Source: Macrostomum lignano | Taxonomy: Eukaryota | Assembly (NCBI GenBank): GCA_002269645.1 | Contig: NIVC01000286.1 | Coordinates: 62,001-126,000 of the forward strand | Direction: 5' to 3' | DNA length: 64,000 nt | Shown: positions 3,546 to 64,000 of the stretch, piece by piece | Layout: every line of letters starts with the position of its first letter | How positions within the stretch are numbered: position 1 is the first letter of the stretch | Made by a program: the position numbers and the translations under genes | The notes under the pieces: generated by a model | Databases searched by the model: none | What the model saw: the letters and a program-made list of their open reading frames with translations, nothing else | Told to the model about the DNA's origin: nothing

Positions 3546-4369
3546 TCCCATCTCCTGTATACTCTCTCCAATCTCCTGTCTACTCTCCCCCCTCTACTCT
3601 TCCTATATCCCCTCTACTCTCTCTTGTCTATCTTCTACTCTCCCATCTCCCGTCTACTCTGTCGCATCTCCCCTCTACTCTCTTAAGTCTCCCGTCTACT
3701 CTCTCCTTTCCTCAACTCTCCCTCTTACCGTCTTCGCAACAAGTAATGTTTTCATTATTGTACGAAAAAACAATTATAAAATGCTTTTATACTACTGCTG
3801 ACTTGAGTAGATAATACGCATATTTAAGTTCCTTGTTTAATATCTTTTCAAATCAGTTCAATTATTTAGCAATAATGAAGATGGCAGCGCATATTTATTA
3901 GTTACAGCCAGCGTTTTGTATCCCATTTTGTTTCAATTTGTTTGATCTTACACTTGAAACAAGTCTGTTATAGCTCTGATATGATCTACAATTAGTTGCA
4001 TAATTAAGATTCGATTTAATCGTTGCTTACTTGTCTAAATAGATAGATTTATATTCATATACATTGTCGGTTTGTGCTAATGTTTCGCATAATATATGTA
4101 CAGAATCTAACCAGTTAAATATCAATTGCAGTTCTTGCTAGGCTAATCTGGTGCAACGAAAGCTAATAGTTTGTATGTTGTGTGTCTGTGTGTGCGCCTG
4201 TTTGCCATGAAACAGAAATTTCTGTGGCAGGCAGTTCCCACGGTCCTGCAAAGCATTTAATAATTTTGTTAGTTTTTGTCTGGAGATTTTTTATACTTAA
4301 TCCGCTATTCTTAACTCCTTTCTTTGTTTTCAAATATTATCCAAATCTCATAAGACTTTCCCTTATCCA

Positions 4370-5637: not shown

Positions 5638-5673
5638 ATTTTATTCCCATACCCCACCAACAAACACGCGCAG

Positions 5674-17830
<12,157 letters not shown>

Positions 17831-33194: not shown

Positions 33195-33427
33195 TTACAT
33201 CAGCCCGAGCACCTCTCCAGTTTCGCAGTCCAGATCCACATCGTAGAAGCATGGCCTGGTTGGCAGTCCCGGCATCAGGGAGATCGAACCAAGGACGGCG
33301 AAAACGAAACCGGCACCGGCCGAGAGGCGCAGGTCGCTGACGCAGACGGTGAAGCCGGTTGGCCTGCCAGCTAGGCTGGGGTTGTCGCTGAGGCTGAAGT
33401 TGGTCTTGGCCATGCACACCGGCAGGT
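33195..33427 (-). CDS. MTHFD1: MTHFD1 exon 11
   Basis: NLPVCMAKT...[12 protein letters not shown]...GLM*. Confidence 0.95.
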
Positions 33428-42400: not shown

Positions 42401-45400
42401 AGCCGTCCTCGGCCGTGGGCAAAGCAGTCTGCAGCACCCAGTCCAGCACCAGTACAAACAGGAATGGCGCCAGCGTGTCCCCCTGGAGTGCTCCGGATGA
42501 CGTATCGAAGGTGTCCGAGAGGCAGTCTGGGGTCACCACCGCAGCTCTGGTGTTCTGGTACAGCGCCATCGTGGCATTGACCAGTTGCTGCGGTACGTTG
42601 TACGCTGTGAACATCAGCGGAAGCGCGCTTCTGGCGATCGAGTCGAAGGCCTTTTTGAAGTCAACGAAGACCACGATCAGGTCGACTGGCGCGTGCGGGC
42701 CTCCTCGATGACTCGCCGAAGGGCCAGTACCTGCGTGACGGTGCCTCGCCTTGGCCGAAACCCGTTCTATGGATCTAGCACGGGCTGCAGCCGGGCGAGC
42801 AGAAGCCGGTTGAAAAGCTTCGCGGTGATGGACAGTAGTCAGATACCTTGGTGCTCCTCCAGTTTGGTGGTGCCTGGCTCGGGGAAAGCCAACTCATAAT
42901 CCCTGGATGGGCGGGCACTTTCGGCGACATCGTCCCACACACCAGCGGTGAGGCAATTCTGCTCACAGTCCTCACAGGGTGTACAGCGGTCCTTTGACTT
43001 ACTAATCAGTCTGGCAGGTATCCCCTAAACTCTCTGGGCCTTGGTTGATGGCTCTCACGGCTGAGTCGCACGACAGCTCAACAGGCCAATCTTCGCGCAC
43101 ACACAGGAAAAGACAACTGAGAAGTGGAGGACAGAATGGCTATACAATCAAGACTCAAACACTCACCTGAGCCAGATCCTTAGTTCTCGAATGGCACAGC
43201 GTCACAGTGGCGTGATGCCAAGTTAACAGTTCGGCCATGGGTGAGCCAACAATTTTTGAACGGCCAACAACTACAGCCGAGACGCCGGCAAGAGAGGCCA
43301 GTCCGGCTCCTCTGCAATCATAATTGTAAATCACTAATTAGTCAGTGAAGGTTTATGAAGACACCATGAGGACTATGAATGGAAGGTTTATGAAGGCACT
43401 AGGAGGATTATGAAGGGAAGGTTTATGAAGGCACTAGGAGGATTATGAAGGAAAGGTTTATGAAGACAATATGAGGACTGTGAAGGAAAGGTTTATGAAG
43501 GCACTAGGAGGATTATGAAGGGAAGGTTTATGAAGGCACTAAGAGGACTATGAAGGGAAGGTTTATGAAGACAACATGAGGACTATGAAGGGAAGGCTTA
43601 TGAAGATAACATGAGGACTATGAAGGGAAGGCTTATGAAGACAACATGAGGACTATGAAGGGAAGGCTTATGAAGGCACTAGGAGGATTATGAAGGGAAG
43701 GTTTATGAAGGCACTAGAAATTATGAAGGGAAGGTTTATGAAGGCACTAGGAGGATTATGAAGGGAAGGTTTATGAAGCCACTAAGAGGACTATGAAGGG
43801 AAGGTTTATGAAGGCACTAGGAGGATTATGAAGGGAAGGTTTATGAAGGCACTAGGAGGATTATGAAGGGAAGGTTTATGAAGGTACTAGGAGGATTATG
43901 AAGGGAAGGTTTATGAAGGCAACATGAGGACTATGAAGGGAAGGCTTATGAAGACACCATGAGGACTATGAAGGGAAGGCTTATGAAGACACCATGAGGA
44001 CTATGAAGGGAAGGCTTATGAAGACACCATGAGGACTATGAAGGGAAGGCTTATGAAGACACCATGAGGACTATGAAGGGAAGGCTTATGAAGACAACAT
44101 GAGGACTATGAAGGGAAGGCTTATGAAGACACCATGAGGACTATGAAGGGAAGGCTTATGAAGATAACATGAGGACTATGAAGGGAAGGCTTATGAAGAC
44201 AACATGAGGACTATGAAGGGAAGGCTTATGAAGGCACTAGGAGGATTATGAAGGGAAGGTTTATGAAGGCACTAGAAATTATGAAGGGAAGGTTTATGAA
44301 GGCACTAGGAGGATTATGAAGGGAAGGTTTATGAAGGTACTAGGAGGATTATGAAGGGAAGGTTTATGAAGGTACTAGGAGGATTATGAAGGGAAGGTTT
44401 ATGAAGGCACTAGGAGGATTATGAAGGGAAGGTTTATGAAGGCACTAGAAGGATTATGAAGGGAAGGTTTATAAAGACAGATTAATGAGGTACACTATTA
44501 TTAATTACTCCTGAAAGAATATGACTACCTGGGAGACTGAATGAGTTCAAGGCATCCCCTAGGTGTGCAGGGCACAAAGCAGTCCAGGTTGCCCCTGGCC
44601 AATCTGCCAGCGTTGACAACGCCCAGGCCATCAACGTCCTTCTCTCGAGCGATGGCATTGGTAACCAGATCGCTGTCAATAGCAGTGTTGCAGTCCAATG
44701 GCAGCTGGACAATAATCCCATGGACATTGGGATCTTCGTTTAACTGATTGACAATAGTTAACAGAGCGGATTCGCTAATATCGGTGCCAAGTTTCACGTG
44801 TTTAGCGGTGATGCCAACTTCAGTGGCTGATTTCAGTTTCTGACCAATGTACACGTTGGAGTCTTGACGATCGCCAACCTTCACATTGTTGATGAAATAA
44901 TTAGATTAGAATAATTATAAGTTCAATATTGGTGATAAGAACTTGTCTTGTATTCAATTTATCGAAGTAACAAGCGTAGGTCAACGGCAAGAGTAACTAT
45001 GGCGTTTTTTTAAATAATCAATGCCTCGTCAGCTAATTAGAAACAGGATCCTAGGTCCTAGGATCTGTGGATTAAGATCCAATTCTATTTCTAATCAAAT
45101 GGGATAAACATATAAATATGATCTAATGGCTTGCTCATTTTTCATTAATTTGAAGTGAACAATCCATTAAGGCTTATAGTGATGCTTATGCAAGTAGTAA
45201 ATCTTAAATAAGATTCTAATTGTAATTCTGTAACCTTCTAAAGGATTGCAATGAATTTTTGGAACTTTATTTATCTAACTAAACTTTAAAAAATTCTAAA
45301 TCCTAAGAAATGTGTCTAGGAATGCACAACATATTGTAGCTATTCGAAATTTAGTTCTTTATAATAAATTAAGAATTTGATAAAATTAAATAAAAAAGAA

Positions 45401-48400
45401 TACAATTACAAAGCAAACTAACCAACCTGAACAATTGCTAATCCTGGAGTAAAGTTGGGCACAGTTTGTCTGACTTCATCAATTTTAGTCTTGATAGCAG
45501 ATTTTACATCACTAAAAAGAAATTTTATATTGATTAGATAATTGCTAACTCATAATCACAAACAAAAAAGAATAAATACTAATTAGAATCATCATTATCA
45601 TATTAAAAAAGGACAAAAGACAGCTATAGATAGAAAATATAAAACTAAAAATGATAGATTTTTATAACTAGAAACTTAAAAAGAAACAAATCTAGGATTT
45701 TCCCAAAGAGGGTGAATTGACCCCTTTGACCTCTTTTCCTAAATTTGTCACTGAGTAATTGTTTGTTTTCCATTGGCTTTAACTTTTATAGAATAGTTAA
45801 TTCTTAATTTAGAAAGGTAGCAATTTTTAGATATATTAGTTATTCTTTGGCTTTATAGCATCTCTACCTATAAAAATGAAAACTCTGTATAAGTGTCTAT
45901 GGCCAATTTTGTTGCTATGGACTCCTAAACTGCTTAACCAAATTATACCAAATTTTACACCCACCCTAAACTTACTACAGAGAGTGTCTTAGGCTATATT
46001 AAAATTTCCTAGACTCAGGTCTTCTTACCTAAAAGTGCAAAAACTGCTCAAAATGCACAATTATTTCACTAAATCCTCCATAGCGCCGCTTGAAGACGAT
46101 CTACCAATCCTCTTCAAATTTGACACACTCAATCTTCAACTATTTTGACACAATCATGTAAAATTTTGAGTCTCAAAGTTAATCTTTTTTTGGCTGTTTT
46201 TGTCAGCAAGACAGCCACCCCAACCTCCACCTGCCTGCCTCTCCCAATCTGGGCCCAGATGTGCAAAAGGGGTTTCAAAATTGACAAACTTTCAGCTGTC
46301 ATAAGCTTGTTCCATGTAAAGCAATTCACTTCAAACTTGACACAATTCTTCATTGACTCATTTGCTGTCTAAATGTAAAGTTTTAACTCTGTAACTCATT
46401 CAGAACAGAAACTGTAAGCATGTGAAGTTTGTCTGCTTTTTTTGTTGTTAGAAAAATTTGAAAAATTCTAACAACTGTCCTCTTTTTTGGCAAACTCTAC
46501 AGAAGTTTAACAGTGGATGGCAATTGGCAAATCAAGGCAATCCAGCATGGTTTATAAAAGAAAAAGATTTATGAAAAGGCGATGCAATGCAATACAAGTC
46601 ATACCATGGAAATTTTACTATTAAGTTTTATCTAAAGGTAAATTTAAAATTGGCCTCCTAAGAAATACATATTTCCTTGGTTGTTAGACTGATACAGACT
46701 GTAGTGGAGCCAAAGATACAGATATGCAACTTCCTCTCAAGGCTGCAAATTGGCCAGAAAAATGACGTGATTGGCCACAAAGCATGAGAAAAATCATGAG
46801 TTACTTATTACGTTCCACAAACTGGCTTTTGAAGCAGGGGTCAGCAGACTTACCTCAAATGCCAGATAAAGAATCCAGCTCATGTGTGGGCCAGATGAGA
46901 GTGGTAAGGAGAAGGAATAGACTATTAGAAAAGAGGAGCAGCGAGAGGGATAAAAGAAAAGATAGAAGGTAAAAAGAGAAACAAATGATGAGGGGTGAGG
47001 ATGAGGAGAGTGAGGTGGGAGAAGAGAGGAGAGAAGAAGGAAGGAGAAGAGGGAGAGAGAGAGGGGCGAGAGAAGCAAGAGGAAAGTAGAGATAAGGAGA
47101 GAGGAGTAGGAGAGAGGAGAGAGGAGAAAGTAGAGATTAGAGAGTGAAGATGAGTGAACAGAAAGAAGAGAGAAGAGATAAGACAGGATTGAGAGAGGAA
47201 AGCAGAGAGGAGAGAGCATACTTGCGCAACCTCCGAAACTCGGTCGGCCATGCGACTTAGTTTTAACAAAAATGCGACGTAGTTTTTGGCCAAAAATGCG
47301 ACTTACATGTAAAAAAAACCCTAAAGCAAAATTAACGCAACTTTGGGTAAACGGCAGGAGTAACTATGATCGTCTTATTAAGCCAAAATGCCTCGTCAGC
47401 TACTTAGTACTACTCCTTGGTTATTTTTTTGGGTGGGCATTTTTGCGACTTCCTTGGTTGGCGGCCAAATTGGTCGGCCGGATCGGCCGACTTGGCCGAC
47501 TGTTGCGCATGTATGGGAGAGAGGAAAGAAGAGAATGGAGAGACAGTAGAGTAAAGGGAAGAGAGAAAAGATAAGGTTGTAGAGATGAGAGAGATGAAAT
47601 GAGAAATGAGAAATGAGAGATGAAGAAGAGAGAGGAGAGTAGAAAGAATACAGGAAGAGAGTATATAGAAGAGAGAAGAGAGGAGAGGAGAAAGGAAAGA
47701 GAGGAGTCAAAGTCAAAGATGTGAAATAAAAGAGTATAGATGAAAGAGATGAGAGAATGTATAAGAGAGTAAAGTTGACAGAAGAGAGGGGAGATGAGAG
47801 AACAGAGACAAGAGTAAACAGACAAGAGATGGGAGAGTAAAGAGAACAGAGGAGAAAGAGATTATGGAGACAAGATGAGAGAGGGGGAGAAGAGAAATAT
47901 GTGAGAGCAGAGAAGAGAGACAAAAGGGAGAAAGAAGTGGAGTAAGGAGAAAAAGGGGAGAGAATTGATAAACAGGGAAGAGAGAGAGGGGAGGAAAGAG
48001 AAGAATTAAAGAAGGGAGAAAGTAGAGAGAAGAGAGATGGGAAAGTGGAGAGTAGAGATAAGAGGGGAGAGAGAGAGAGGGGAGAGAAGAGAAGAAAGAG
48101 GAGAGGAGAGGAGAGAAGAGTGAAGAAAGAGGAGAGAGGAAGGAACAGGGAAGATGAGATGAGAGAGATGAGAGAGACAAGAAAAAAGAGAAATGTGAAG
48201 AAATAAAAGAGCAGAGATAAAAGAGAAAGAGAGAAAGGAGATATAAGAGAGCAAAGACAAGAGAGAAGAGAGGGGAGAAGACGAGAGAAGAGGGAAGTGA
48301 GGAAAGAAGAGAGAAGAGAAGAGATAGCAGGAGAGACAAAAGACAAGAGAGAATAGAGGAAACAGAAGAGAAGATGGAAGTTTCATTGTTTCAAAGGATC

Positions 48401-50942
48401 CAAGAGACGTGATGGAGGCAGAGGGAGAGGTCAGAGTTTTCCAATGCATGTTTTAAACAAACATTGCTTGATATTCTATGCAGCACCCCAGCCAATGAGA
48501 TCAATGCTTGCTACAAATCTTAATTTTACACAATTTTATTCAATTCTATGTTTACCTCAATCTCTATCCTATATACTAAAAAGTCCTAACTATTAACAAG
48601 TTTTTGTTTGTGTATGACTTTAGATTTTAGAACATAGGCAAAAAATAGTTTCTAAGCATTAGAATTCCCAGCGTTCAAAATCTATAGGTTTCAACATCTT
48701 ATCTCTACATATAAAAATGAAAACTCTGTCTGTCTGTGTGTGGACAATTTTGATAGCTATGGACTCCCAAACCGCTCAACCAAATGACACCAAACTTTAC
48801 ACCCACCCTAAACTTACTACGGAGAATGTCTTAGGCTACCTTTTAACTTCCTAGACTCAAGTCTTCCTACCTAAAAGTACAAAAAACTGCTCAAAATGCG
48901 CGATTTTTTCACTAAATCCTCCATAGCGCCGCTCCACTTCTACCGATTCTCTTCAAATTTGACACAGACAATCTTCAACTATTTTGGCACAATTGTATAA
49001 AATTTCAAATCTCAAAGTTAATCCTGAAAGCCGCTGTGCACTTTTAAAGTTAGGCTGTTTTTCTCAGCGTAGCAACCACCCCAACCTCCGCCCGCCTGCC
49101 TCTCTTTCCCGATACCGATCTGGGCCCAGATGTGTAAAAGGGTTTCAAAATTGACTAACTTTCAGCTCCCATAAGTTTGCTCCACGTAAAGGGATTGACT
49201 TCAAACTTGACACAATTCTTCATTGACTCATTCTCTATCTAAATGTAAAGTTTCAACTCTAACTCAACCGAAAAAGAAACTGTAAGCATGTGAAGTTTGT
49301 CTGCTTTTTCTGTTGTTTGCCGCTCATCCAACTCATTCCCCCAGACGAATGATCAGGCGATAGGGCTCAATGTACATAGCGAATGTACAGTGTTTTGGAA
49401 TAACTTTTTTATAGCCTTCTCGCACCCCGAGAGTGGAGAGGCTACGTTTAGCCATAACAGTTTAATTAGTGAGAAATTCTAATCACTGCCCTCCCCTCCT
49501 CTGTATTGGCAAACTCTGCAGCAGTTTAACAGTGGATGGCAATTGGCAAATCGAGGGAATCCAGCAAAAAAGCGAAAGCGAAAAGCGGTTTGTAAAAGCG
49601 AAAGATTTATGAAAAGGCGATGCGATGCAATGCACAATGCAATAAAACCCTACTAAATTAGGCACACCCATGGAAATTTTAGGTTTCTTTTAAAAGTAGT
49701 GTGTAAATTTTAAATGGCCTCCTAAGAAATGCGTATTTCCTTGGTTGTTAGACTGATGCAGACTGCAGTGGAGCTGAAAATATAAAAATTCCTTTCAGGG
49801 CTGCAAATTGGCAAGAAAGATGACGTGATCAAAGCATGAGAACAACGATGAGAGTAGTACGTCCACAAACTGGCTTTCGAAGCAGGGATCGGCAGACTTT
49901 TACTTCAAAAGCCAGATAAAGAATCCAGATTATGTGCGGGCCAGATGAGAGTGGAAAGGAGAAGGAATAGACTATTAGAAGAGAGGAGAGGCGAGAGGGG
50001 GGATAAAGAAAACATGGAAGATAAGAGGAGAGACAAGTGGTGAGGAGAGAGCAGAGAAGAAGGGAGGAAGAAGCGAGAGGAGGGGAGAAAGGAGGGAGAG
50101 GAAAGAGTAAATGTGAGAGAGGGGAGAGATGAGACAGAGGATCGATGAGAGGAGAGTAGAGAAGAGTGAGAAGAGAGTAGAGATGAGAGAGCAGAAAGAA
50201 GATGACAGAGGGTCAAGAGGAGAGGAGAGATTAGAGAGGAGAGAGTAGAAAGGATAGAGAAGAGAGGAGATAAGAGGGGGAGAGAGGAGTGAGAAGAAAA
50301 GAGATAGAGATAAGAGAGGGGTGTAAGAAGAGGGGAGAAAGGAGAGATGAGATTGTAGAGATGAGACAGATTAAAGGAGAGATGAGAGAGTAAAGATGAG
50401 AGATGAAAAAGGTGAGAGGAAAGTGCAGAGAGACGAGATAGAGATAAGAGAGGGGTGTAAGAAGAGGGGAGAAAGGAGAGATGAGATTGTAGAGATGAGA
50501 CAGATTAAAGGAGAGATGAGAGAGTAAAGATGAGAGATAAAAAGGTGAGAGGAAAGTGCAGAGAGACGAGAGAAAATAATAGAGGAGAGAGAGTATAGAA
50601 GAAAGAAGAGAAAAGAAGAGAGGAGTAAGGAAAGAGAGGAGTCAGAAGAGGTGAAGAGAAGAGTACAGAGGAGATAAGTGAGAGAACGTATAAGAGAGTA
50701 AAGATGACAGATGAGAGAGCAGAGATGAGGGTGAACAGACGAGAGATGGGAGAGTAGAGAGAACAGAGGAGAGATAAGAGAGAAGAGATTACAGAGACTA
50801 GAGGAGAGAGGAGAGACAGGGAGAGAGAAGAGGAATTAGGAGAATGAAGAGGGAAGAGAGGAGAAGATAGATGGGAGAGGAGAGATAAGAGAGAGAGAGA
50901 GAGGGAGAAAGAGAGAGAGAAGGGGAGAAGAGAGAGAGAGAA

Positions 50943-51009
<67 letters not shown>

Positions 51010-52744
51010 AGCGCAGAGCAAAGAGAAACGAGAAGAGATAATTGAGAAAAGATAAAAGAAGAGAAAGGAGAGATGAAAGAGCAGACGAGAGAGAAGAGAG
51101 GTGAGGGAAGAGACAAGAGAGAAGAGAAATGATTGAAGAGACGAGCGACGAGGGGAGAGAGAAGAGATAAAACAAGAAAAGAGATAAAAGGAAAGAGAGA
51201 GAGGAAAGAGGTGAGGGAAGAGACGAGAGAAAAGGGGAGAGAGGAGAGAGGAAAGAGTAGAGAGGAGAGATGAGAGAGTAGAAGAGAGAGTTAAGAGATG
51301 AGAGAGTAGAGGAGAGAGTTAAGATATGAGAGAAAAGAAGAGAGAGGAGAAGGAAGAGACGAGAGAAGAGGGGAGAGAGGAGAGAGGAGAGGAGAAAGAA
51401 AACGAAAAAGTAGAGAGGGAGAGGAGAGGAGAGAGAAAAGAAGAGGGAAGAGATGAGATAAGAGATATGAAAGAGAAGAAAGATGAGGGAGGATACGAAA
51501 GAAGATGGGAGAGAGGAGAGAGGAGAGGAGAGGAGAGAAAACGAAAAGTAGAAAGGAGAGAGGAGAGGAGAGAGAAAAGAATAAGGAAGAGATGAGGGAA
51601 GATACGAGAGAAGAGAGGAGAGAAGAGAGAGGAGAGAGGAGAGACGAGGGACGAGAGAGAAGAAAGGAAACAGAAGAGACGATAGAAATTTTAAAGGATC
51701 CAATGGACATAGGGAGAGTCAGGGAGAGGCCAGAGTTTGCCAATACATGTTTTAAAGTCAGACAGACATTGCCTGACATTCTGTGCAGTACCCCAGCCAA
51801 CAATATCAATGTTTGCCTCAAATCCTTACACCAATATGTCCATTTTATGTCTACCTCTATCCTACTAACTATTAACAAGTTTTTGTTTGTGTATGGCCTT
51901 AGATTTCAGAATTTCTGGGGATTCTCAGTTCCAGGGATTGGAATTCCCTGGGTTCAAAATCCGCGGGTATCAACAGCTTGTTGTTTATAAGAAAAAAAAA
52001 CTAGCACATTACTAGGTAGGACTGTAATTAATATAGATTAGGCCTATAGGGCTTATATTATTGCCTAAAAATTCGAATGAAATTCACAATTAGGCTAGAC
52101 TAGGCCTATAGGCTCTATTGGCATTCAAGAATCAAGAATTGATTGCTAAACTCCAGTTATAATTAGTACAATTTTAAGTTTAGCAAATGATTCTTAAAAA
52201 TTAAAAATTGCTACCTACCTACTAATCCTATAGCAAATAATAAAAATAAAATTCTGTCCTATGACCTATTCCTATCTAACCCTTATACCAGGAACCAGGG
52301 CCTATAGGGCCTATAGGGCCTATATATGCGGCATATGCCTAGGCCTATTTTTACATTGGACATGAACCTATCTTAATCCTGATATCTTGACATCTTAAAA
52401 TAAAATCCTGACAAACAGGCTAAGGCATGTAGCCTGGATTCAAGCCAATCAAGGATTTATATCAGCCAGGGGGGGGGCAGAGACATGAGACATCAATCTA
52501 TTTCTTTAATGCATGCATAACGTAGAAATAAAAACTGAAAAGCAAAATAAAAAAGCTGTAAAAAATTTTGGGGGACATTTCCCCAGTGTCCCCCCGCCTT
52601 GGGTACATCCCTGCTGACAAAAATTATTAATAAGTGTCATAAGATACTAAAATAAGAGTATTAGGTATTTAGGCTATGCTATAGTATATTACTACTACAA
52701 ATAGCTTACGCAGAAATATCCTTTCCTGAAATCAGCTTTGCCAT
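33195..52744 (-). CDS. MTHFD1: Cytosolic trifunctional C1-tetrahydrofolate synthase, 11 exons, 933 aa
   Basis: Exons 52744-52710, 45511-45427, 44878-44529, 43311-43167, 39648-39355, 38691-38522, 37577-37390, 37299-37031, 36580-35883, 35321-34987, 33427-33195 total 2802 nt, all in phase. Motifs Yxxx[63 protein letters not shown]; no mitochondrial leader. Confidence 0.97.
33525..34860. repeat. 30 bp minisatellite (tgaggatctaatccaatttagattcctacc)
   Basis: Tandem units, 10-aa period. Confidence 0.95.
34987..35321 (-). CDS. MTHFD1: MTHFD1 exon 10
   Basis: [13 protein letters not shown]...HWAEGG...YGADG; donor gtgagt. Confidence 0.95.
35360..35875. repeat. Two abutting 21 bp and 20 bp minisatellites sharing accctcca
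   Basis: ctaccctccagttgcttccac followed by caaccctccaatgagacaca. Confidence 0.92.
35883..36580 (-). CDS. MTHFD1: MTHFD1 exon 9
   Basis: RLDIDP...[10 protein letters not shown]...[11 protein letters not shown]. Confidence 0.96.
36606..36960. repeat. 46 bp minisatellite rich in TGTACA palindromes
   Basis: acatgtacactcttctgtactgtagctgtacattgtacacacttgt units. Confidence 0.93.
37031..37299 (-). CDS. MTHFD1: MTHFD1 exon 8
   Basis: [27 protein letters not shown]. Confidence 0.96.
37390..37577 (-). CDS. MTHFD1: MTHFD1 exon 7
   Basis: [17 protein letters not shown]...[12 protein letters not shown]; not listed in the ORF track. Confidence 0.96.
37608..38478. repeat. 24-25 bp minisatellite (tcatggcgctatctgacacctatg)
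   Basis: Tandem units. Confidence 0.95.
38522..38691 (-). CDS. MTHFD1: MTHFD1 exon 6
   Basis: [11 protein letters not shown]...EIG...[12 protein letters not shown]; donor gtgagt. Confidence 0.95.
38865..39255. repeat. 27 bp minisatellite (caattagtaagctactgacctaaaaat)
   Basis: About 14 tandem units. Confidence 0.95.
39355..39648 (-). CDS. MTHFD1: MTHFD1 exon 5
   Basis: ADLLVVAIG...[14 protein letters not shown]...[15 protein letters not shown]. Confidence 0.96.
39735..41010. repeat. 34/38 bp minisatellite (ggtttatgaagacactatgaagact...)
   Basis: Tandem units of two length classes. Confidence 0.95.
41621..43100 (-). mobile_element. 5'-truncated, degenerate RTE-like non-LTR retrotransposon
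   Basis: RT motifs [38 protein letters not shown]; YADD decayed to YAGG; frameshifts; stop followed by a (TTG)n tail near 41623-41634; the 5' edge is approximate. Confidence 0.88.
43167..43311 (-). CDS. MTHFD1: MTHFD1 exon 4
   Basis: [32 protein letters not shown]; donor gtgagt; not listed in the ORF track. Confidence 0.95.
43345..44470. repeat. 35 bp minisatellite (tatgaagggaaggtttatgaaggcactaggaggat)
   Basis: Tandem units; shares a core with the 39735 array. Confidence 0.95.
44529..44878 (-). CDS. MTHFD1: MTHFD1 exon 3
   Basis: [14 protein letters not shown]...VQLPL...KDVDGL...[11 protein letters not shown]. Confidence 0.96.
44979..45040 (+). other. Degenerate 28S rRNA helix 69-71 fragment (copy B)
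   Basis: ggtcaacggcaagagtaactatg...aatgcctcgtcagctaattag. Confidence 0.7.
45427..45511 (-). CDS. MTHFD1: MTHFD1 exon 2
   Basis: [28 protein letters not shown]; in phase with exons 1 and 3. Confidence 0.92.
47217..47515. mobile_element. 299 bp MITE with 8-bp TSD carrying the 28S-like cassette (copy C at 47345-47410)
   Basis: TIR catacttgcgcaac versus gttgcgcatgtatg; TSD ggagagag on both sides. Confidence 0.85.
49960..51690. repeat. About 1.7 kb GA-rich polypurine tract including (GA)n
   Basis: Direct reading; mirrored as a TC-rich tract at about 60480-62230. Confidence 0.95.
52710..52744 (-). CDS. MTHFD1: MTHFD1 exon 1 ([12 protein letters not shown])
   Basis: Matches the MTHFD1 N-terminus (ILNGKEISA); donor gtaagc; phase 2 joins exon 2. 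Confidence 0.9.
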
Positions 52745-54220
52745 GTTGACTTTTGTAGTGTAGCCGAAAAAAGCTTTTGATTGATGAAGAACTTTATTTT
52801 GTAAAGAAAAGTAAAGAAACTTAAATTTCAAGCTGAAGCACTTACGAAGACCTATCGCGATCATTGGTGTGTGTTGTCGCAAAAGCGAAGCGCGTGAGAG
52901 GCACCATGATAAGATAAAACCGAGATTATGACGATAACAATACTTCATAGAAAATAATAAAAATTAAAAATATGAGTGATTTCATTATTACTGATAAAAA
53001 ATTGATAAAACGTGAGGTGTGCAAGGTTGCTTTTGTTTAAATAGGTTACTGATGGGTGATAGTTACAATTCGCACGTTTCAAATTTATTGTTTCAAAAAG
53101 AGAGCCAAAACCAGAATACAACCTCAGAAATTCCCCACCCCAAATGGCAAGTAGACTTTAGAGCTCTCCTTTCAAAGTGAAAAAAACGTGGACATGGCAT
53201 TGAAAATCCCTAGCTGTTGCTTGAATCCTAAATTCCAGGAACTAGATATGGGAAACATATGTCCCCGTAACCAATATATTATCTGTAAATGTGCAGCTTT
53301 GTCTAAAACCTCCGTAACTTCCCGTACATGTACGTAGCCATATCCGTTCCAAGGACTATTGTTAAGAGTTGTTTAGTAGTCCTTGATCCGTAGCAATGGC
53401 GGAAGTCTACCATTAAATGCTATCCCAAATTTGGGATTGTGAATTTCGAAAGGACCAGCATAAACAGTAATACATGAAGGTTGCATATTGGGGGTTGTGC
53501 ATGAAGCTTGACTGGAAAAATTCCGTGTAAAAATGACGCGAACTCGGCCGGGGTCTTTTACGAGTTTTTAGTCGAGTTACCGCCTAGTCTATAAATTATC
53601 TACATCCATGAAGATGCAAATAAAACGCATGTGTTTCACTAGCTAATTACAGTTAACTGTTTAGTATGTATTATGACGTAGTGTAGTATGTGATTTTGAA
53701 ATAGGGGGGGTTTATTGCATTACGGCGCCTGATACACGTGGTAAACTGTGACACATTGTGCTCAAATTTTTCTCAGCTAGCTTCTTCTTTACCGTAACCG
53801 TCTTGGCTGGGGCGCACCTAGATGCAGTCATGCACGAGCTTCCTCACCACTGCATCACTGTTCTCGATCCTTTACAAATGCCTCCTAAACATTTCTGCAA
53901 ACCTGCAGGCATTTGTCGTTTTCTCTTTCCATGAATCCTTGTGACATTCTTCTGTAACATTTCATGTTCAAAGTAAAATATTTGCTCAGCTTCAGCTTTG
54001 CTTCTGCGCAGCTAAAATACAGTATATAGTAAAATGATGAAGGTTACATGTACATGGATTACAAGTAAATGTTTTTGTAAAGAGGTACATGTAATTATGA
54101 GTCGAGCAAGTTTTATGCAGATATAATTAGTAGGAGCTTCTGAATTAGTGACGAAGGCATGACAGTTAATTAAATCCGTTTTTTAGTGTTTGGTAAGTAA
54201 GTTTAAATCATTTTCTGCTT

Positions 54221-54367
54221 TTAAAGTGCCGCTTTTATGCCGTTTCGTTCGCCATTTTGTTGCTTTGAATAACTTCCAATGTCTTCTAGAAGCAATCGAA
54301 CTGTTTCCTTGGCACAGCCCCAGAAAATTGTCAAACCTGAGCCGCCGTGACCGTAGTTGTGATAGAT
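54221..54367 (-). CDS. DAO: D-amino acid oxidase terminal exon (left-arm copy)
   Basis: ttgcag acceptor; [19 protein letters not shown] matches DAO VIHNYGHGGYGLTIHWGCA. Confidence 0.85.
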
Positions 54368-54419
54368 CTGCAAGTTTGAGAGTTTTATAGGCTTATTAAC
54401 CCTCGAATAAATGATTGCT

Positions 54420-54773
54420 GGGGTTGAGAAGCTACTCAACTCGAACTGAATCAGGTTGAGAAACTACTCAACTCGAACGGAATCAGGTTGAGAAGCTATA
54501 CTCAACTCGAACGGAATCAGGTTGAGAAACTACTCAACTCGAACTGAATAAGGTTGAGAAGCTACTCAACTCGAACTGAATCAGGTTGAGAAACTACTCA
54601 ACTCGAACGGAATCAGGTTGAGAAGCTATACTCAACTCGAACGGAATCAGGTTGAGAAACTACTCAACTCGAACGGAATCAGGTTGAGAAACTACTCAAC
54701 TCGAACTGAATCAGGTTGAGAAGCTATACTCAACTCGAACTGAATCAGGTTGAGAAGCTATACTCAACTCGAA
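54420..54773. repeat. 32/34 bp minisatellite (left copy, cut by the gap)
   Basis: Reverse complement of the 56228-57736 array. Confidence 0.95.
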
Positions 54774-54827
54774 NNNNNNNNNNNNNNNNNNNNNNNNNNN
54801 NNNNNNNNNNNNNNNNNNNNNNNNNNN
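54774..54827. other. Assembly gap (54 N)
   Basis: Run of N. Confidence 1.
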
Positions 54828-54998
54828 AAGTTTTGTAATAAACTACATGTAGCATCTCTTTGCAATATACCTCAGCCGTTTCTTGTAAGCCTTGACACGT
54901 CAGTAATTCCACCCCCCCTCCCACAAGCTTTAACATATCAACTTCCCCCCTGACATCTCAGCGATGCCCCCCATATGAAATCTAAAAAAATATGTCCA

Positions 54999-55050
54999 CC
55001 TAACACTAACCCTAGCCTAACTCTAACCCTAACCCTAACCCTAACCCTAA
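54999..55050. repeat. Short interstitial telomere-like (CCCTAA)n tract
   Basis: taaccctaaccctaaccctaaccctaa plus degenerate units. Confidence 0.7.
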
Positions 55051-55977
55051 AGCACTGACATTTCAGTAATTCACTCCAAGAGTCATTATAGCACTACAGC
55101 ATTATAGCGATTCCCTGCAAGCCTTGACATCGTAGGGATTCCCAAATGAATCTCTTAACTTCGACATGAAGCTTCTTTTAATTTTTACATTACGCTTTTT
55201 CTATCAGCGATCCCTCCCCTGAGGAAGCAACAAATAATGTATTAAAAAGTTTTCAATAAACTACATGCAGCTTCTGACTTTAGCCTTGACATTTCAGCTA
55301 TTCCCCCTGTAAGCCTTGAAATGTCAGCGATGCCCCCATAAACCTTGAAATCTGAAAAATCCCCTGTTAACCTTGAAACCCGCTAAAATCTAACCATCAA
55401 TCCAAACCTGACCTAAACCTAACTTTAACCCAACCTAAAGCCTTGAAATCTCAGCAATTCTTCTCCCCTAAGCCTTGACATTTTAGTGATTCCTTCTTTA
55501 AGAATCACAGCACTATAACGATTCCCTCCAAGCCTTGACATCGTAGCAATTCCCAAATGAATCTTTTAACTTCGACAGGACTTTTCTTTTATGTATACAT
55601 AGTGCTTCTTTTCTTTTTTACATGACTCTTCTTCTATCAGCGCCCCCGTGGCGAGCCAACAAAGAATGTAATAAAAAATTGATCGGTATTGATCGGTAAA
55701 TGCACTAATGATGCATCTAGGGTTTGATTCTCAAGTCAAAGTCTAGATGCTCAAACGAAAGACAGTATGGTCAACTCAGGGACTACTTAAACTTAAGGAC
55801 TAGTTTAAGTAGTCCCTGGGTCAACTGAAGATTAATGTGCTTAAATGAAGGTCACGATACTCAATTAAAAGTTACATTGCTCAAAATAAAGATCACAATA
55901 GTCAAGTTAATAGAGTCTGTTCATGATACTGAAATTACATTTATGCTAGATTAAAATTTGCCTCACCGACCATGCAG

Positions 55978-56181
55978 TTCGGACACTGTGGTACTCGGCG
56001 GCACCTCACAGAAAGGCAACTGGAGCACGGAGGTGTCAGCAGTTGACAAAGCGGACATCCTGCACGAGTAACATCTCTGTGGCCGTCACTTGCCTCAGCT
56101 CCCATTGTGCAGGACGCTGTCGGTCTGCGGCCTGGTCGTGAGCAGGTTCGCTTGGAGAGGGAAATTCGACCCGACTGTACT
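55978..56181 (+). CDS. DAO: D-amino acid oxidase penultimate exon with an apparent 1-nt frameshift
   Basis: SDTVVLGGTSQKGNWS...ILH, then in another frame VTSLWPSL...GLRPGREQVRLERE (DAO TVTLGG..GNW and GFRPVRPQIRLERE); donor gtgagt in phase 0; frameshift near 56063-56067. Confidence 0.82.
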
Positions 56182-56227
56182 GTGAGTTCGAATTTAGTAG
56201 CCTTTTATCTGACTTACGATTCATACA

Positions 56228-57736
56228 GTTCGAGTTGAGTATAGCTTCTCAACCTGATTCCGTTCGAGTTGAGTAGTTTCTCAACCTGATTCAGTTCGAG
56301 TTGAGTATAGCTTCTCAACCTGATTCAGTTCGAGTTGAGTATAGCTTCTCAACCTGATTCAGTTCGAGTTGAGTAGTTTCTCAACCTGATTCAGTTCGAG
56401 TTGAGTAGTTTCTCAACCTGATTCAGTTCGAGTTGAGTATAGCTTCTCAACCTGATTCAGTTCGAGTTGAGTATAGCTTCTCAACCTGATTCAGTTCGAG
56501 TTGAGTAGCTTCTCAACCTGATTCAGTTCGAGTTGAGTATAGCTTCTCAACCTGATTCCGTTCGAGTTGAGTAGTTTCTCAACCTGATTCAGTTCGAGTT
56601 GAGTATAGCTTCTCAACCTGATTCAGTTCGAGTTGAGTAGCTTCTCAACCTGATTCAGTTCGAGTTGAGTATAGCTTCTCAACCTGATTCAGTTCGAGTT
56701 GAGTATAGCTTCTCAACCTGATTCAGTTCGAGTTGAGTAGCTTCTCAACCTGATTCAGTTCGAGTTGAGTATAGCTTCTCAACCTGATTCAGTTCGAGTT
56801 GAGTATAGCTTCTCAACCTGATTCAGTTCGAGTTGAGTAGCTTCTCAACCTGATTCAGTTCGAGTTGAGTATAGCTTCTCAACCTGATTCAGTTCGAGTT
56901 GAGTAGCTTCTCAACCTGATTCAGTTCGAGTTGAGTAGCTTCTCAACCTGATTCAGTTCGAGTTGAGTATAGCTTCTCAACCTGATTCAGTTCGAGTTGA
57001 GTAGCTTCTCAACCTGATTCAGTTCGAGTTGAGTATAGCTTCTCAACCTGATTCCGTTCGAGTTGAGTAGTTTCTCAACCTGATTCAGTTCGAGTTGAGT
57101 ATAGCTTCTCAACCTGATTCCGTTCGAGTTGAGTAGTTTCTCAACCTGATTCCCTTCGAGTTGAGTAGTTTCTCAACCTGATTCAGTTCGAGTTGAGTAT
57201 AGCTTCTCAACCTGATTCAGTTCTAGTTGAGTAGTTTCTCAACCTGATTCCGTTCGAGTTGAGTAGTTTCTCAACCTGATTCAGTTCGAGTTGATTATAG
57301 CTTCTCAACCTGATTCAGTTCGAGTTGAGTATAGCTTCTCAACCTGATTCCGTTCGAGTTGAGTAGCTTCTCAACCTGATTCAGTTCGAGTTGAGTATAG
57401 CTTCTCAACCTGATTCAGTTCGAGTTGAGTATAGCTTCTCAACCTGATTCAGTTCGAGTTGAGTAGTTTCTCAACCTGATTCCGTTCGAGTTGAGTAGTT
57501 TCTCAACCTGATTCCGTTCGAGTTGAGTATAGCTTCTCAACCTGATTCCGTTCGAGTTGAGTAGTTTCTCAACCTGATTCAGTTCGAGTTGAGTAGCTTC
57601 TCAACCTTATTCAGTTCGAGTTGAGTAGTTTCTCAACCTGATTCCGTTCGAGTTGAGTATAGCTTCTCAACCTGATTCCGTTCGAGTTGAGTAGTTTCTC
57701 AACCTGATTCAGTTCGAGTTGAGTAGCTTCTCAACC
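56228..57736. repeat. 32/34 bp minisatellite with an internal GTTGAG...CTCAAC hairpin
   Basis: cagttcgagttgagtatagcttctcaacctgatt units filling the last DAO intron. Confidence 0.96.
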
Positions 57737-57789
57737 CCAGCAATCATTTATTCGAGGGTTAATAAGCTATAAAACTCTCAAACTTGCAG

Positions 57790-57936
57790 ATCTATCACAA
57801 CTACGGTCACGGCGGCTCAGGTTTGACAATTTTCTGGGGCTGTGCCAAGGAAACAGTTCGATTGCTTCTAGAAGACATTGGAAGTTATTCAAAGCAACAA
57901 AATGGCGAACGAAACGGCATAAAAGCGGCACTTTAA
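57790..57936 (+). CDS. DAO: D-amino acid oxidase terminal exon (right-arm copy)
   Basis: ttgcag acceptor; 48 codons IYHNYGHGG...GIKAAL then TAA. Confidence 0.85.
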
Positions 57937-59416
57937 AAGCAGAAAATGATTTAAACTTACTTACCAAACACTAAAAAACGGATTTAATTAACTGTCATGC
58001 CTTCGTCACTAATTCAGAAGCTCCTACTAATTATATCTGCATAAAACTTGCTCGACTCATAATTACATGTACCTCTTTACAAAAACATTTACTTGTAATC
58101 CATGTACATGTAACCTTCATCATTTTACTATATACTGTATTTTAGCTGCGCAGAAGCAAAGCTGAAGCTGAGCAAATATTTTACTTTGAACATGAAATGT
58201 TACAGAAGAATGTCACAAGGATTTCATGGAAAGAGAAAACGACAAATGCCTGCAGGTTTGCAGAAATGTTTAGGAGGCATTTGTAAAGGATCGAGAACAG
58301 TGATGCAGTGGTGGAGGAAGCTCGTGCATGACTGCATCTAGGTGCGCCCCCAGCCAAGACGGTTACGGTAAAGAAGAAGCTAGCTGAGAAAAATTTTGAG
58401 CACAATGTGTCACAGTTTACCACGTGTATCAGGCGCCGTAATGCAATAAACCCCCCCTATTTCAAAATCACATACTACACTACGTCATAATACATACTAA
58501 ACAGTTAACTGTAATTAGCTAGTGAAACACATGCGTTTTTATTTGCATCTTATGGATGTAGATAATTTATAGACTAGGCGGTAACTCGACTAAAAACTCG
58601 TAAAAGACCCGGCCGAGTTCGCGTCATTTTTACACGGAATTTTTCCAGTCAAGCTTCATGCACAACCCCCAATATGCAACCTTCATGTATTACTGTTTAT
58701 GCTGGTCCTTTCGAAATTCACAATCCCAAATTTGGGATAGCATTTAATGGTAGACTTCCGCCATTGCTACGGATCAAGGACTACTAAACAACTCTTAACA
58801 ATAGTCCTTGGAACGGATATGGCTACGTACATGTACGGGAAGTTACGGAGGTTTTAGACAAAGCTGCACATTTACAGATAATATATTGGTTACGGGGACA
58901 TATGTTTCCCATATCTAGTTCCTGGAATTTAGGATTCAAGCAACAGCTAGGGATTTTCAATGCCATGTCCACGTTTTTTTCACTTTGAAAGGAGAGCTCT
59001 AAAGTCTACTTGCCATTTGGGGTGGGGAATTTCTGAGGTTGTATTCTGGTTTTGGCTCTCTTTTTTGAAACAATAAATTTGAAACGTGCGAATTGTAACT
59101 ATCACCCATCAGTAACCTATTTAAACAAAAGCAACCTTGCACACCTCACGTTTTATCAATTTTTTATCAGTAATAATGAAATCACTCATATTTTTAATTT
59201 TTATTATTTTCTATGAAGTATTGTTATCGTCATAATCTCGGTTTTATCTTATCATGGTGCCTCTCACGCGCTTCGCTTTTGCGACAAACACCACCAATGA
59301 TCGCGATAGGTCTTCGTAAGTGCTTCAGCTTGAAATTTAAGTTTCTTTACTTTTCTTTACAAAATAAAGTTCTTCATCAATCAAAAGCTTTTTTCGGCTA
59401 CACTACAAAAGTCAAC

Positions 59417-59451
59417 ATGGCAAAGCTGATTTCAGGAAAGGATATTTCTGC
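59417..59451 (+). CDS. MTHFD1: MTHFD1 exon 1, second copy (rest presumably beyond the window)
   Basis: ATGGCAAAGCTGATTTCAGGAAAGGATATTTCTGC|gtaag, identical to 52744-52710. Confidence 0.85.
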
Positions 59452-61139
59452 GTAAGCTATTTGTAGTAGTAATATACTATAGCATAGCCTAAATACCTAA
59501 TACTCTTATTTTAGTATCTTATGACACTTATTAATAATTTTTGTCAGCAGGGATGTACCCAAGGCGGGGGGACACTGGGGAAATGTCCCCCAAAATTTTT
59601 TACAGCTTTTTTATTTTGCTTTTCAGTTTTTATTTCTACGTTATGCATGCATTAAAGAAATAGATTGATGTCTCATGTCTCTGCCCCCCCCCCTGGCTGA
59701 TATAAATCCTTGATTGGCTTGAATCCAGGCTACATGCCTTAGCCTGTTTGTCAGGATTTTATTTTAAGATGTCAAGATATCAGGATTAAGATAGGTTCAT
59801 GTCCAATGTAAAAATAGGCCTAGGCATATGCCGCATATATAGGCCCTATAGGCCCTATAGGCCCTGGTTCCTGGTATAAGGGTTAGATAGGAATAGGTCA
59901 ATAGGACAGAATTTTATTTTTATTATTTGCTATAGGATTAGTAGGTAGGTAGCAATTTTTAATTTTTAAGAATCATTTGCTAAACTTAAAATTGTACTAA
60001 TTATAACTGGAGTTTAGCAATCAATTCTTGATTCTTGAATGCCAATAGAGCCTATAGGCCTAGTCTAGCCTAATTGTGAAATTTCATTCGAATTTTTAGG
60101 CAATAATATAAGCCCTATAGGCCTAATCTATATTAATTACAGTCCTACCTAGTAATGTGCTAGTTTTTTTTCTTATAAACAACAAGCTGTTGATACCCGC
60201 AGATTTTGAACCCAGGGAATTCCAATCCCTGGAACTGAGAATCCCCAGAAATTCTGAAATCTAAGGCCATACACAAACAAAAACTTGTTAATAGTTAGTA
60301 GGATAGAGGTAGACATAAAATGGACATATTGGTGTAAGGATTTGAGGCAAACATTGATATTGTTGGCTGGGGTACTGCACAGAATGTCAGGCAATGTCTG
60401 TCTGACTTTAAAACATGTATTGGCAAACTCTGGCCTCTCCCTGACTCTCCCTATGTCCATTGGATCCTTTAAAATTTCTATCGTCTCTTCTGTTTCCTTT
60501 CTTCTCTCTCGTCCCTCGTCTCTCCTCTCTCTTCTCTCCTCTCTTCTCTCGTATCTTCCCTCATCTCTTCCTTATTCTTTTCTCTCTCCTCTTCTCTCTC
60601 CTTTCTACTTTTCGTTTTCTCTCCTCTCCTCTCCTCTCTCCTCTCTCCATCTTCTTTCGTATCCTCCCTCATCTTTCTTCTCTTTCATATCTCTTATCTC
60701 ATCTCTTCCCTCTTCTTTTCTCTCTCCTCTCCTCTCCCCTCTCTACTTTTTCGTTTTCTTTCTCCTCTCCTCTCTCCTCTCTCCCCTCTTCTCTCGTCTC
60801 TTCCTTCTCCTCTCTATTCTTTTCTCTCATATCTTAACTCTCTCCTCTACTCTCTCATCTCTTAACTCTCTCTTCTACTCTCTCATCTCTCCTCTCTACT
60901 CTTTCCTCTCTCCTCTCTCCCCTTTTCTCTCGTCTCTTCCCTCACCTCTTTCCTCTCTCTCTTTCCTTTTATCTCTTTTCTTGTTTTATCTCTTCTCTCT
61001 CCCTCGTCGCTCGTCTCTTCAATCATTTCTCTTCTCTCTTGTCTCTTCCCTCACCTCTCTTCTCTCTCGTCTGCTCTTTCATCTCTCCTTTCTCTTCTTT
61101 TATCTTTTCTCAATTATCTCTTCTCGTTTCTCTTTGCTC

Positions 61140-61233
<94 letters not shown>

Positions 61234-62867
61234 TTCTCTCTCTCTCTTTCTCCCTCTCTCTCTCTCTTTCTCCCTCTCTCTCTCTCTCTTATCTCTCCTC
61301 TCCCATCTATCTTCTCCTCTCTTCCCTCTTCATTCTCCTAATTCCTCTTCTCTCTCCCTGTCTCTCCTCTCTCCTCTAGTCTCTGTAATCTCTTCTCTCT
61401 TATCTCTCCTCTGTTCTCTCTACTCTCCCATCTCTCGTCTGTTCACCCTCATCTCTGCTCTCTCATCTGTCATCTTTACTCTCTTATACGTTCTCTCACT
61501 TATCTCCTCTGTACTCTTCTCTTCACCTCTTCTGACTCCTCTCTTTCCTTACTCCTCTCTTCTTTTCTCTTCTTTCTTCTATACTCTCTCTCCTCTATTA
61601 TTTTCTCTCGTCTCTCTGCACTTTCCTCTCACCTTTTTTATCTCTCATCTTTACTCTCTCATCTCTCATTTAATCTGTCTCATCTCTACAATCTCATCTC
61701 TCCTTTCTCCCCTCTTCTTACACCCCTCTCTTATCTCTATCTCGTCTCTCTGCACTTTCCTCTCACCTTTTTCATCTCTCATCTTTACTCTCTCATCTCT
61801 CCTTTAATCTGTCTCATCTCTACAATCTCATCTCTCCTTTCTCCCTCTTCTTACACCCCTCTCTTATCTCTATCTCTTTTCTTCTCACTCCTCTCTCCCC
61901 CTCTTATCTCCTCTCTTCTCTATCCTTTCTACTCTCTCCTCTCTAATCTCTCCTCTCCTCTTGACCCTCTGTCATCTTCTTTCTGCTCTCTCATCTCTAC
62001 TCTCTTCTCACTCTTCTCTACTCTCCTCTCATCGATCCTCTGTCTCATCTCTCCCCTCTTCTCACATTTACTCTTTCCTCTCCCTCCTTTCTCCCCTCCT
62101 CTCGCTTCTTCCTCCCTTCTTCTCTGCTCTCTCCTCACCACTTGTCTCTCCTCTTATCTTCCATGTTTTCTTTATCCCCCCTCTCGCCTCTCCTCTCTTC
62201 TAATAGTCTATTCCTTCTCCTTTCCACTCTCATCTGGCCCGCACATAATCTGGATTCTTTATCTGGCTTTTGAAGTAAAAGTCTGCCGATCCCTGCTTCG
62301 AAAGCCAGTTTGTGGGACGTACTACTCTCATCGTTGTTCTCATGCTTTGATCACGTCATCTTTCTTGCCAATTTGCAGCCCTGAAAGGAATTTTTATATT
62401 TTCAGCTCCACTGCAGTCTGCATCAGTCTAACAACCAAGGAAATACGCATTTCTTAGGAGGCCATTTAAAATTTACACACTACTTTTAAAAGAAACCTAA
62501 AATTTCCATGGGTGTGCCTAATTTAGTAGGGTTTTATTGCATTGTGCATTGCATCGCATCGCCTTTTCATAAATCTTTCGCTTTTACAAACCGCTTTTCG
62601 CTTTCGCTTTTTTGCTGGATTCCCTCGATTTGCCAATTGCCATCCACTGTTAAACTGCTGCAGAGTTTGCCAATACAGAGGAGGGGAGGGCAGTGATTAG
62701 AATTTCTCACTAATTAAACTGTTATGGCTAAACGTAGCCTCTCCACTCTCGGGTGCGAGAAGGCTATAAAAAAAGTTATTCCAAAACACTGTACATTCGC
62801 TATGTACATTGAGCCCTATCGCCTGATCATTCGTCTGGGGGAATGAGTTGGATGAGCGGCAAACAAC

Positions 62868-63145
62868 CCTATTGCAGCGCATGGCTTAAGTACGCCAGAC
62901 GCCTACACAACCTGCGCCACGCTGTGAAATGACTTACCTGTGAAAGAAACCCTAAAGCAAAATTAACGCAGTTTTGGGTAAACGGCAGGAGTAACTATGA
63001 CTGTCTTATCAAGCGTAAATGCCTCGGCATCTAATTAGTACCGCGCCGCGCCGTACTAATCGCTGCTCGCCGTACGCGCCGCGCCGCGCTGTATTAGATC
63101 CGCGCCGGACGCCGTCCGCCAAAATGCCCATGCGCTGCAATCAGG
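62868..63145. mobile_element. 278 bp MITE present only in the right arm, carrying the 28S-like cassette (copy D at 62976-63041)
   Basis: TIR cct(g)attgcagcgcatgg versus ccatgcgctgcaatcagg; TSD gcaaacaac at 62859-62867 and 63146-63154 (9 bp, or 7 bp if the TIR is one base longer); empty site at about 49313-49321. Confidence 0.9.
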
Positions 63146-64000
63146 GCAAACAACAGAAAAAGCAGACAAACTTCACATGCTTACAGTTTCTTTTTCGGTT
63201 GAGTTAGAGTTGAAACTTTACATTTAGATAGAGAATGAGTCAATGAAGAATTGTGTCAAGTTTGAAGTCAATCCCTTTACGTGGAGCAAACTTATGGGAG
63301 CTGAAAGTTAGTCAATTTTGAAACCCTTTTACACATCTGGGCCCAGATCGGTATCGGGAAAGAGAGGCAGGCGGGCGGAGGTTGGGGTGGTTGCTACGCT
63401 GAGAAAAACAGCCTAACTTTAAAAGTGCACAGCGGCTTTCAGGATTAACTTTGAGATTTGAAATTTTATACAATTGTGCCAAAATAGTTGAAGATTGTCT
63501 GTGTCAAATTTGAAGAGAATCGGTAGAAGTGGAGCGGCGCTATGGAGGATTTAGTGAAAAAATCGCGCATTTTGAGCAGTTTTTTGTACTTTTAGGTAGG
63601 AAGACTTGAGTCTAGGAAGTTAAAAGGTAGCCTAAGACATTCTCCGTAGTAAGTTTAGGGTGGGTGTAAAGTTTGGTGTCATTTGGTTGAGCGGTTTGGG
63701 AGTCCATAGCTATCAAAATTGTCCACACACAGACAGACAGAGTTTTCATTTTTATATGTAGAGATAAGATGTTGAAACCTATAGATTTTGAACTCTGGGA
63801 ATTCTAATGCTTAGAAACTATTTTTTGCCTATGTTCTAAAATCTAAAGTCATACACAAACAAAAACTTGTTAATAGTTAGGACTTTTTAGTATATAGGAT
63901 AGAGATTGAGGTAAACATAGAATTGAATAAAATTGTGTAAAATTAAGATTTGTAGCAAGCATTGATCTCATTGGCTGGGGTGCTGCATAGAATATCAAGC

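Follow-up and report, generated by a model that had tools for sequence, protein, structure and literature searches.

Does the inverted repeat that ends the stretch of DNA analysed here represent a true palindromic duplication of a one-carbon metabolism locus, or has a single locus been assembled twice and written the second time in the wrong direction? The question arises for 64,000 nucleotides (nt) of Macrostomum lignano contig NIVC01000286.1 (positions 62,001 to 126,000; hereafter the window, whose own coordinates are used throughout), in which the start of an MTHFD1 gene and the end of a neighbouring DAO gene occur twice in opposite orientation, on either side of an assembly gap. The sequence on the two sides of the gap is referred to as the left and the right contig. 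Our analysis indicates that the same DAO-MTHFD1 locus was probably assembled twice, as two alleles, and that these were joined head-to-head in inverted orientation at the gap, giving a false duplication. That the copies are allelic and that a scaffolding error joined them is what we infer from the geometry of the repeat, its gene content, the types of difference between its copies and the repeats bounding both contig ends.

Geometry and gene content of the inverted repeat

A seed-and-extend search and BLAST of the window halves revealed a 6.3-kb mirror-image repeat, in which the left arm (48466-54773), with which the left contig ends, matches the right arm (57385-64000) as its reverse complement. 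Positions 48466-49321 pair with 64000-63145 over 856 nt with one mismatch, and positions 49312-54773 pair with 62867-57385 at 98.9% identity with five mismatches and 34 gap openings. Similarity of this order is far above chance expectation. An earlier note on this DNA had described near-identical reverse-complement arms with an axis near 56080; BLAST and global alignment bear out the arms, and the midpoint was found at ~56079. The outer limit of the repeat is set by the window: the right arm continues past position 64000 and position 48466 only mirrors the window end, hence 6.3 kb is a lower bound and the arms are possibly much longer. No duplication boundary was found in the visible sequence, the similarity reaching the window end at 64000, its mirror at 48466, and the gap. 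On its inner side the left arm does not diverge from the right one but runs out with the contig at the gap, its final 383 nt matching the complement of 57385-57767 at 100%.

The gap (54 N, 54774-54827) is the sole N run in the 64-kb window, and the arms flank it. It is only the scaffold join through these N that places the inverted arms, ~99.9% identical by substitutions, on one molecule. A continuity check across the gap found its flanks not to be continuous with each other. The left flank stops mid-unit in a 32-nt satellite and the right flank begins at a unit boundary of an unrelated ~415-nt repeat, both contig ends at the gap falling in tandem repeats. Both flanks are intronic or non-coding, so that the reading frame across the gap is not at issue.

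The 32-nt satellite is present on both sides. On the left, ~11 units (54422-54773, plus strand) are cut mid-unit by the gap; on the right, the array is complete (56226-57736, minus strand), with ~46 units in 1.5 kb, and lies in the last intron of the right DAO copy. The left array agrees base for base with the first 352 nt of the one on the right, although the units are only ~92% alike among themselves, and the order of units is identical between the copies over 11 units. The unit has a palindromic core (GTTGAG..CTCAAC) and is the same as its reverse complement in 20 of its 32 positions.

The 2.6-kb asymmetric spacer with a 54-N gap reported in the earlier note was recovered in its length (2611 nt) and its gap, but most of it is not foreign to the arms: 1159 nt (56226-57384) are the rest of the 32-nt satellite, and 1398 nt (54828-56225) are sequence beyond the satellite. 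Past the shared satellite, the right contig thus runs through the remaining satellite and the penultimate DAO exon into the ~415-nt tandem repeat. A left copy continuing in the same way would need at least 2557 nt, whereas 54 N are written.

The ~415-nt repeat forms two units at the start of the right contig (54828-55650, plus strand), with paired segments at 54832/55250, 55096/55507 and 55164/55597. Each unit contains a telomere-like tract, (CCCTAA)n at 54999-55050 in the first and a degenerate copy at ~55380-55440 in the second, reading TTAGGG on the minus strand towards the gap. A true telomere at the start of the right contig was considered and rejected, as the (CCCTAA)n tract is only 52 nt long, starts 171 nt in from the contig end and has a degenerate counterpart in the next ~415-nt unit. 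No Pfam match was found in six frames of 54828-55990, and there is no coding signal beside the gap. Two near-perfect hairpins (55774-55821 and 55713-55750; stems of 20 and 15 nt, loops of 8 nt) lie a short way upstream of the penultimate DAO exon, among repeats of ~20 nt of the 'GCTCAA' type, and may form a small foldback element.

Both arms carry the last DAO exon and MTHFD1 exon 1, as the earlier note had stated. The last DAO exon occurs at 54221-54367 (minus strand), where it ends in AAL followed by a stop and is preceded by a cag acceptor, and in identical form at 57790-57936 (plus strand). Exon 1 of MTHFD1, on the same strand and ~1.5 kb downstream of the last DAO exon, occurs at 52710-52744 (minus strand, ATG at 52744) and, again identical, at 59417-59451 (plus strand, ATG at 59417).

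Analysis of the left contig revealed one complete, in-frame trifunctional MTHFD1 on the minus strand. Its exon 1 splices in phase to exon 2 (45525-45421), and exons 2 to last (33198-45525) encode the dehydrogenase/cyclohydrolase and FTHFS domains; further exons were located at 44884-44537, 43298-43164, 39654-39352, 38691-38521, 37585-37388, ~37432-37028, 36589-35879 and 35323-34985, with the last exon at 33425-33201. Pfam identified PF00763 and PF02882 (THF_DHG_CYH and THF_DHG_CYH_C; E 5e-68) and PF01268 (FTHFS; E 6e-93) on the same strand, and a single homologue (P0052) aligns over both the dehydrogenase/cyclohydrolase and the FTHFS parts. By this domain content the predicted product is a trifunctional C1-tetrahydrofolate synthase. 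The best matches, at 65-67% identity, are tardigrade, annelid, mollusc and spider proteins, and no frameshift was found among the left MTHFD1 exons alignable to homologues. The right MTHFD1 is represented within the window by exon 1 alone, any remainder lying beyond 64000. A selected palindromic amplification of a folate gene, of the DHFR kind, hence found no support: two copies are seen, the second of them visible as exon 1 only.

Two further observations concern the body of the left MTHFD1. A GC-rich retroelement fragment bearing a reverse transcriptase lies on the minus strand inside an MTHFD1 intron (41537-42900; RVT_1 E 8e-7, just under the Pfam cut-off). A tRNA-Ser(GGA) of 92 nt called by ARAGORN at 39618-39709 (plus strand) is probably a false positive, lying on the opposite strand over MTHFD1 exon 5 with Rfam silent; no structured RNA was found with Rfam.

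The DAO sequence is a fragment. It matches PF01266 positions 263-352 (E 1e-11) with an HNYGHGG motif, and aligns with human DAO residues 234-330 (E 1.5e-19) and with D-aspartate oxidase (DDO; E 6e-17). These matches identify it, at the level of predicted protein, as the C-terminal part of a DAO-family FAD-dependent oxidoreductase, either DAO or DDO, comprising the last third of the protein only. The penultimate exon (55978-56181, plus strand, 204 nt) is present in the right contig only and is frameshifted as written; its alignment to human DAO residues 234-294 becomes gapless once one base is restored at 56068/56069. The missing base may reflect an error in the consensus or else a genuine inactivating mutation. 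A tblastn search with human DAO, the query being an approximate sequence, found no DAO exons in the 64-kb window besides the last two. Both copies thus lack the first ~233 codons within the window, and in both the missing 5' parts point into the gap.

Differences between the copies and the origin of the join

Global alignment of the left arm (6308 nt) with the right arm (6616 nt) was used as the basis for listing the differences between them. The largest is an insertion of 287 nt present only in the right arm. Here lies a miniature inverted-repeat transposable element (MITE) of 277 nt (62868-63144) with a 14-nt perfect terminal inverted repeat, flanked by 10-nt target-site duplications GTTGTTTGCC at 62858-62867 and 63145-63154. 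The left arm holds the empty target site, a single GTTGTTTGCC at 49302-49311. In addition, the arms differ by 21 single-base indels, all of them in one-base runs (from 1-vs-2 up to 9-vs-10), by two GA microsatellites unequal in length by 21 and 7 nt, and by ~6 isolated substitutions in 6.3 kb, a divergence of ~0.1%. Two further small mismatch clusters are local alignment shifts.

These differences are of two kinds. The one-base run indels outnumber the substitutions by ~3.5 to 1, and an excess of this type is the signature of long-read consensus error, not of natural variation; it points to consensus errors here. The presence or absence of the MITE, the two microsatellite lengths and the ~6 substitutions are haplotype-type variants. 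The pairing of a filled site, complete with target-site duplication, and an empty one marks a true transposition polymorphism, and the arms therefore derive from two different DNA molecules. The earlier argument that an arm-specific MITE speaks against a simple fold-back read artefact therefore holds, and the 10-nt target-site duplication, the terminal inverted repeats and the empty left site together rule such an artefact out.

Some repeats within the arms are recorded here in their own right. Partial relatives of the MITE occur elsewhere in the window, for example at 47300-47410 (88%). A GA-rich, purine-rich low-complexity tract of 1.6 kb in MTHFD1 intron 1 (50045-51679 and its mirror at 60495-62133; also 47000-48374) shows a very strong strand skew, with GC skew up to 0.88, and holds most of the microsatellite-length differences between the arms. 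A dispersed repeat of ~600 nt occurs twice in the same intron at 82% identity (45860-46449 vs 48701-49317, the latter also at 63149-63765), and the MITE insertion point is at the edge of the arm-borne copy.

On the reading that we favour, the real locus would exist once and, read on one strand, would comprise the DAO 5' exons, the ~415-nt repeat, the penultimate DAO exon, the intron with the 32-nt satellite, the last DAO exon, 1.5 kb of intergenic sequence, MTHFD1 exon 1, its 7-kb intron and the remaining MTHFD1. The left contig would represent this locus entered from the MTHFD1 side and broken inside the 32-nt satellite. The right contig would represent the other allele in a less accurate version, with the MITE-filled site and other microsatellite lengths, and would cross the satellite and end in the ~415-nt repeat. 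Structural heterozygosity (the MITE, the microsatellites and perhaps the length of the satellite) would have kept the alleles apart in assembly, and the scaffolder would then have put the right contig beside its partner in the wrong orientation and written a gap between them.

Several observations are consistent with this course of events. The (TCTG)n array at 11134-14917 was assembled unbroken over 3.8 kb, which implies that the contigs are of long-read origin. Given that arrays of up to this length posed no obstacle in other parts of the window, repeat length alone would not explain why assembly broke off in the satellite, and a local conflict between the alleles would be the likelier cause. 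One frameshift falls within 351 nt of DAO coding sequence in the right contig, whereas the alignable left MTHFD1 exons have none; together with the one-base run indels, this suggests that the right contig is the less accurate of the two. The absence of the DAO 5' exons is expected from a mis-join, while a real join requires a destroyed gene. The earlier note had left the choice between a true palindrome and a mis-join of two alleles or homeologues; a mis-join of alleles fits better, because the copies flank a gap, one of them is truncated in a satellite, no boundary is visible, the DAO 5' exons are missing and a frameshift is present. Homeologues are unlikely: an origin of the copies in an old genome duplication was rejected because they differ by only 0.1% in substitutions and have their satellite units in the same order.

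Four points weigh against one locus assembled twice. A substitution divergence of ~0.1% is low for alleles left uncollapsed, and their separation would need to be explained by the structural differences. Were the locus single-copy, read-pair or long-read links would turn the right contig round into a direct overlap, so the inverted placement needs an orientation-blind or faulty scaffolding step. A second sequence of the same species was not found: protein searches with the MTHFD1 dehydrogenase/cyclohydrolase part, the FTHFS exon and the DAO fragment gave best identities of 56-69%, and an exact 30-mer from the DAO exon had no match in metagenome contigs. Finally, a real fold-back inversion with a 2.56-kb spacer would yield exactly the structure as written: one arm followed by 352 nt of satellite and the junction, then 1.4 kb of unique sequence, the inverted 1.5-kb satellite and the other arm.

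A genuine fold-back inverted duplication of this form is the main alternative, and we consider it unlikely. It would be a recent event with its junction in the satellite; MTHFD1, duplicated in its promoter and 5' end and perhaps in full, would face its own copy head-to-head, and DAO would be cut in two. The initial break, in the DAO intron that precedes the penultimate exon, would have been repaired by priming back in or near the hairpin-prone 32-nt satellite, upon which reverse copying would have taken in the 3' end of DAO together with the promoter and exon 1 of MTHFD1, leaving DAO without its 5' exons and a spacer with telomere-like tracts. The geometric fit is exact, with the spacer at 54828-57384 between the junction and the right arm, and the palindromic core of the satellite unit (20 of 32 positions) speaks in its favour. 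The small gap of 54 N and the orientation as written are what true spanning links give, and the arms are distinct molecules by the evidence of the MITE and its target-site duplication. The frameshift in the penultimate DAO exon suits a dead gene remnant, but with the arms only 0.1% divergent a genuine frameshift within 204 nt of exon is improbable, and indel differences are frequent enough for an error to be the likely cause. Likewise, a gap at the junction would be in keeping with a real palindrome, since assemblers trim or split palindromic long reads and tend to break at such places; yet the junction coincides exactly with the N run, no sequence crosses the centre and no outer boundary is seen. 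The loss of DAO is required, yet the remnant retains intact splice sites and 50-63% identity to human DAO. Moreover, where a draft assembly shows duplicates on either side of a gap, these are usually false (PMC9516828, PMC8494291).

A further possibility, which we regard as improbable, is that the right contig is a true recent paralogue from elsewhere in the genome that was mis-scaffolded beside the original. The copies are indeed distinct in their MITE and substitutions and are joined solely through the gap, but a paralogue is hard to reconcile with satellite units in identical order over 11 units and a substitution divergence of only ~0.1%. The similarity is unbroken to both visible ends, with no duplication edge or foreign flank, and the unique 1.4 kb are simply the next DAO exon and intron.

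The least probable origin is a single chimeric fold-back long read, from a missed SMRTbell adapter or template-complement read-through: assemblies are reported to contain palindromic chimeras as long as raw reads (7-17 kb; PMC9516828), and the arms are at least 6.3 kb long, but these arms differ by a MITE with target-site duplication vs an empty site, by microsatellite lengths and by substitutions, the structure is asymmetric by 2.6 kb, and the palindrome is broken by an N run instead of being continuous. A giant transposon with long terminal inverted repeats was also rejected, because the exons in the arms belong to host genes, MTHFD1 exon 1 being spliced in phase to the rest of a complete gene.

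The inverted copy is thus most likely not a real biological feature. An annotation that took the join at face value would count one MTHFD1 start too many, list DAO as two truncated genes and describe a 'palindromic amplification' of a one-carbon metabolism locus, all of which are probably false. Spotting a likely false duplication of this kind protects gene counts and gene-family analyses, and flags the scaffold join for curation. If the join were real, it would constitute a modest case of satellite-associated fold-back duplication in an invertebrate-like genome, of interest for rearrangement mechanisms, and existing knowledge of those mechanisms would be unchanged.

Remaining features of the window

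Unusually dense kb-scale tandem arrays occur in positions 1-44500, with periods of 4, 21, 23, 24, 30, 35 and 38 nt. Examples are found at 2823-3595, 4367-5639, 6469-7633, 9366-10436, 11134-14917, 16069-17412, 17897-19403, 33527-34858, 37608-38447, 39741-41011 and 43347-44476. The 3.8-kb (TCTG)n array has a 1.3-kb counterpart, 1.1 kb further along, in which the motif is oppositely oriented. Most of the tandem arrays lie within introns of MTHFD1 and of a prominin-like gene, whose exons encode a prominin-family membrane protein at 5801-11119 (plus strand; PF05478, E 6e-23 at 7907-8392 and E 4e-11 at 10481-11119) and are separated by minisatellite-filled introns. Open reading frames at 27021-28540 (plus strand) encode a Gln-rich and then a Gly/Arg-rich (RGG-like) low-complexity segment, the part at 27021-27629 being without a Pfam match. 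Read by itself, the combination of multi-kb spliceosomal introns, a heavy load of mini- and microsatellites, the TTAGGG-type motif and the MTHFD1 matches suggests an invertebrate-like animal genome.

Comparison with known systems

Genuine palindromes include those of primate Y chromosomes, the inverted-repeat amplifications exemplified by DHFR under methotrexate, and inverted duplication-deletion (inv-dup-del) rearrangements. The repeat analysed in this study resembles them in its inverted arms of at least 99.9% substitution identity, its short single-copy spacer and the presence of genes in the arms. Unlike them, it has a centre that is not continuous, shows no outer boundary within the window and is present in two copies only, with no sign of selection or of a copy ladder, and the arrangement would destroy the neighbouring DAO.

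Closer counterparts are found among assembly errors. Heterotype false duplications in genome assemblies were described by Ko et al. (2022, Genome Biol 23:205; PMC9516828), and the present case is like them in having near-identical copies on one scaffold with a gap between and with haplotype-type variants. Gene copies that are partial or false are a further shared trait, represented here by the second exon 1 of MTHFD1 and by two DAO copies that are truncated. The copies are inverted here and not tandem, and the likeness is drawn on sequence criteria.

Inversion of the copies has its own precedent. In the 2013 assembly of Adineta vaga, the palindromes have since been judged likely artefacts that arose by erroneous scaffolding of phased haplotypes (Simion et al. 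2021; PMC8494291), and a review warns that erroneous scaffolding generates artificial palindromes (PMC7953838). As in A. vaga, where this judgement followed once a chromosome-level assembly existed, the window contains probably allelic regions in inverted orientation on one scaffold; it differs in coming from another organism with another genome style, that of long minisatellite-filled introns, and in being a single case. At the level of what its sequence can reveal, the DAO-MTHFD1 repeat lacks the continuous centre of a genuine palindrome and appears to bear the testable marks of a false haplotype duplication.

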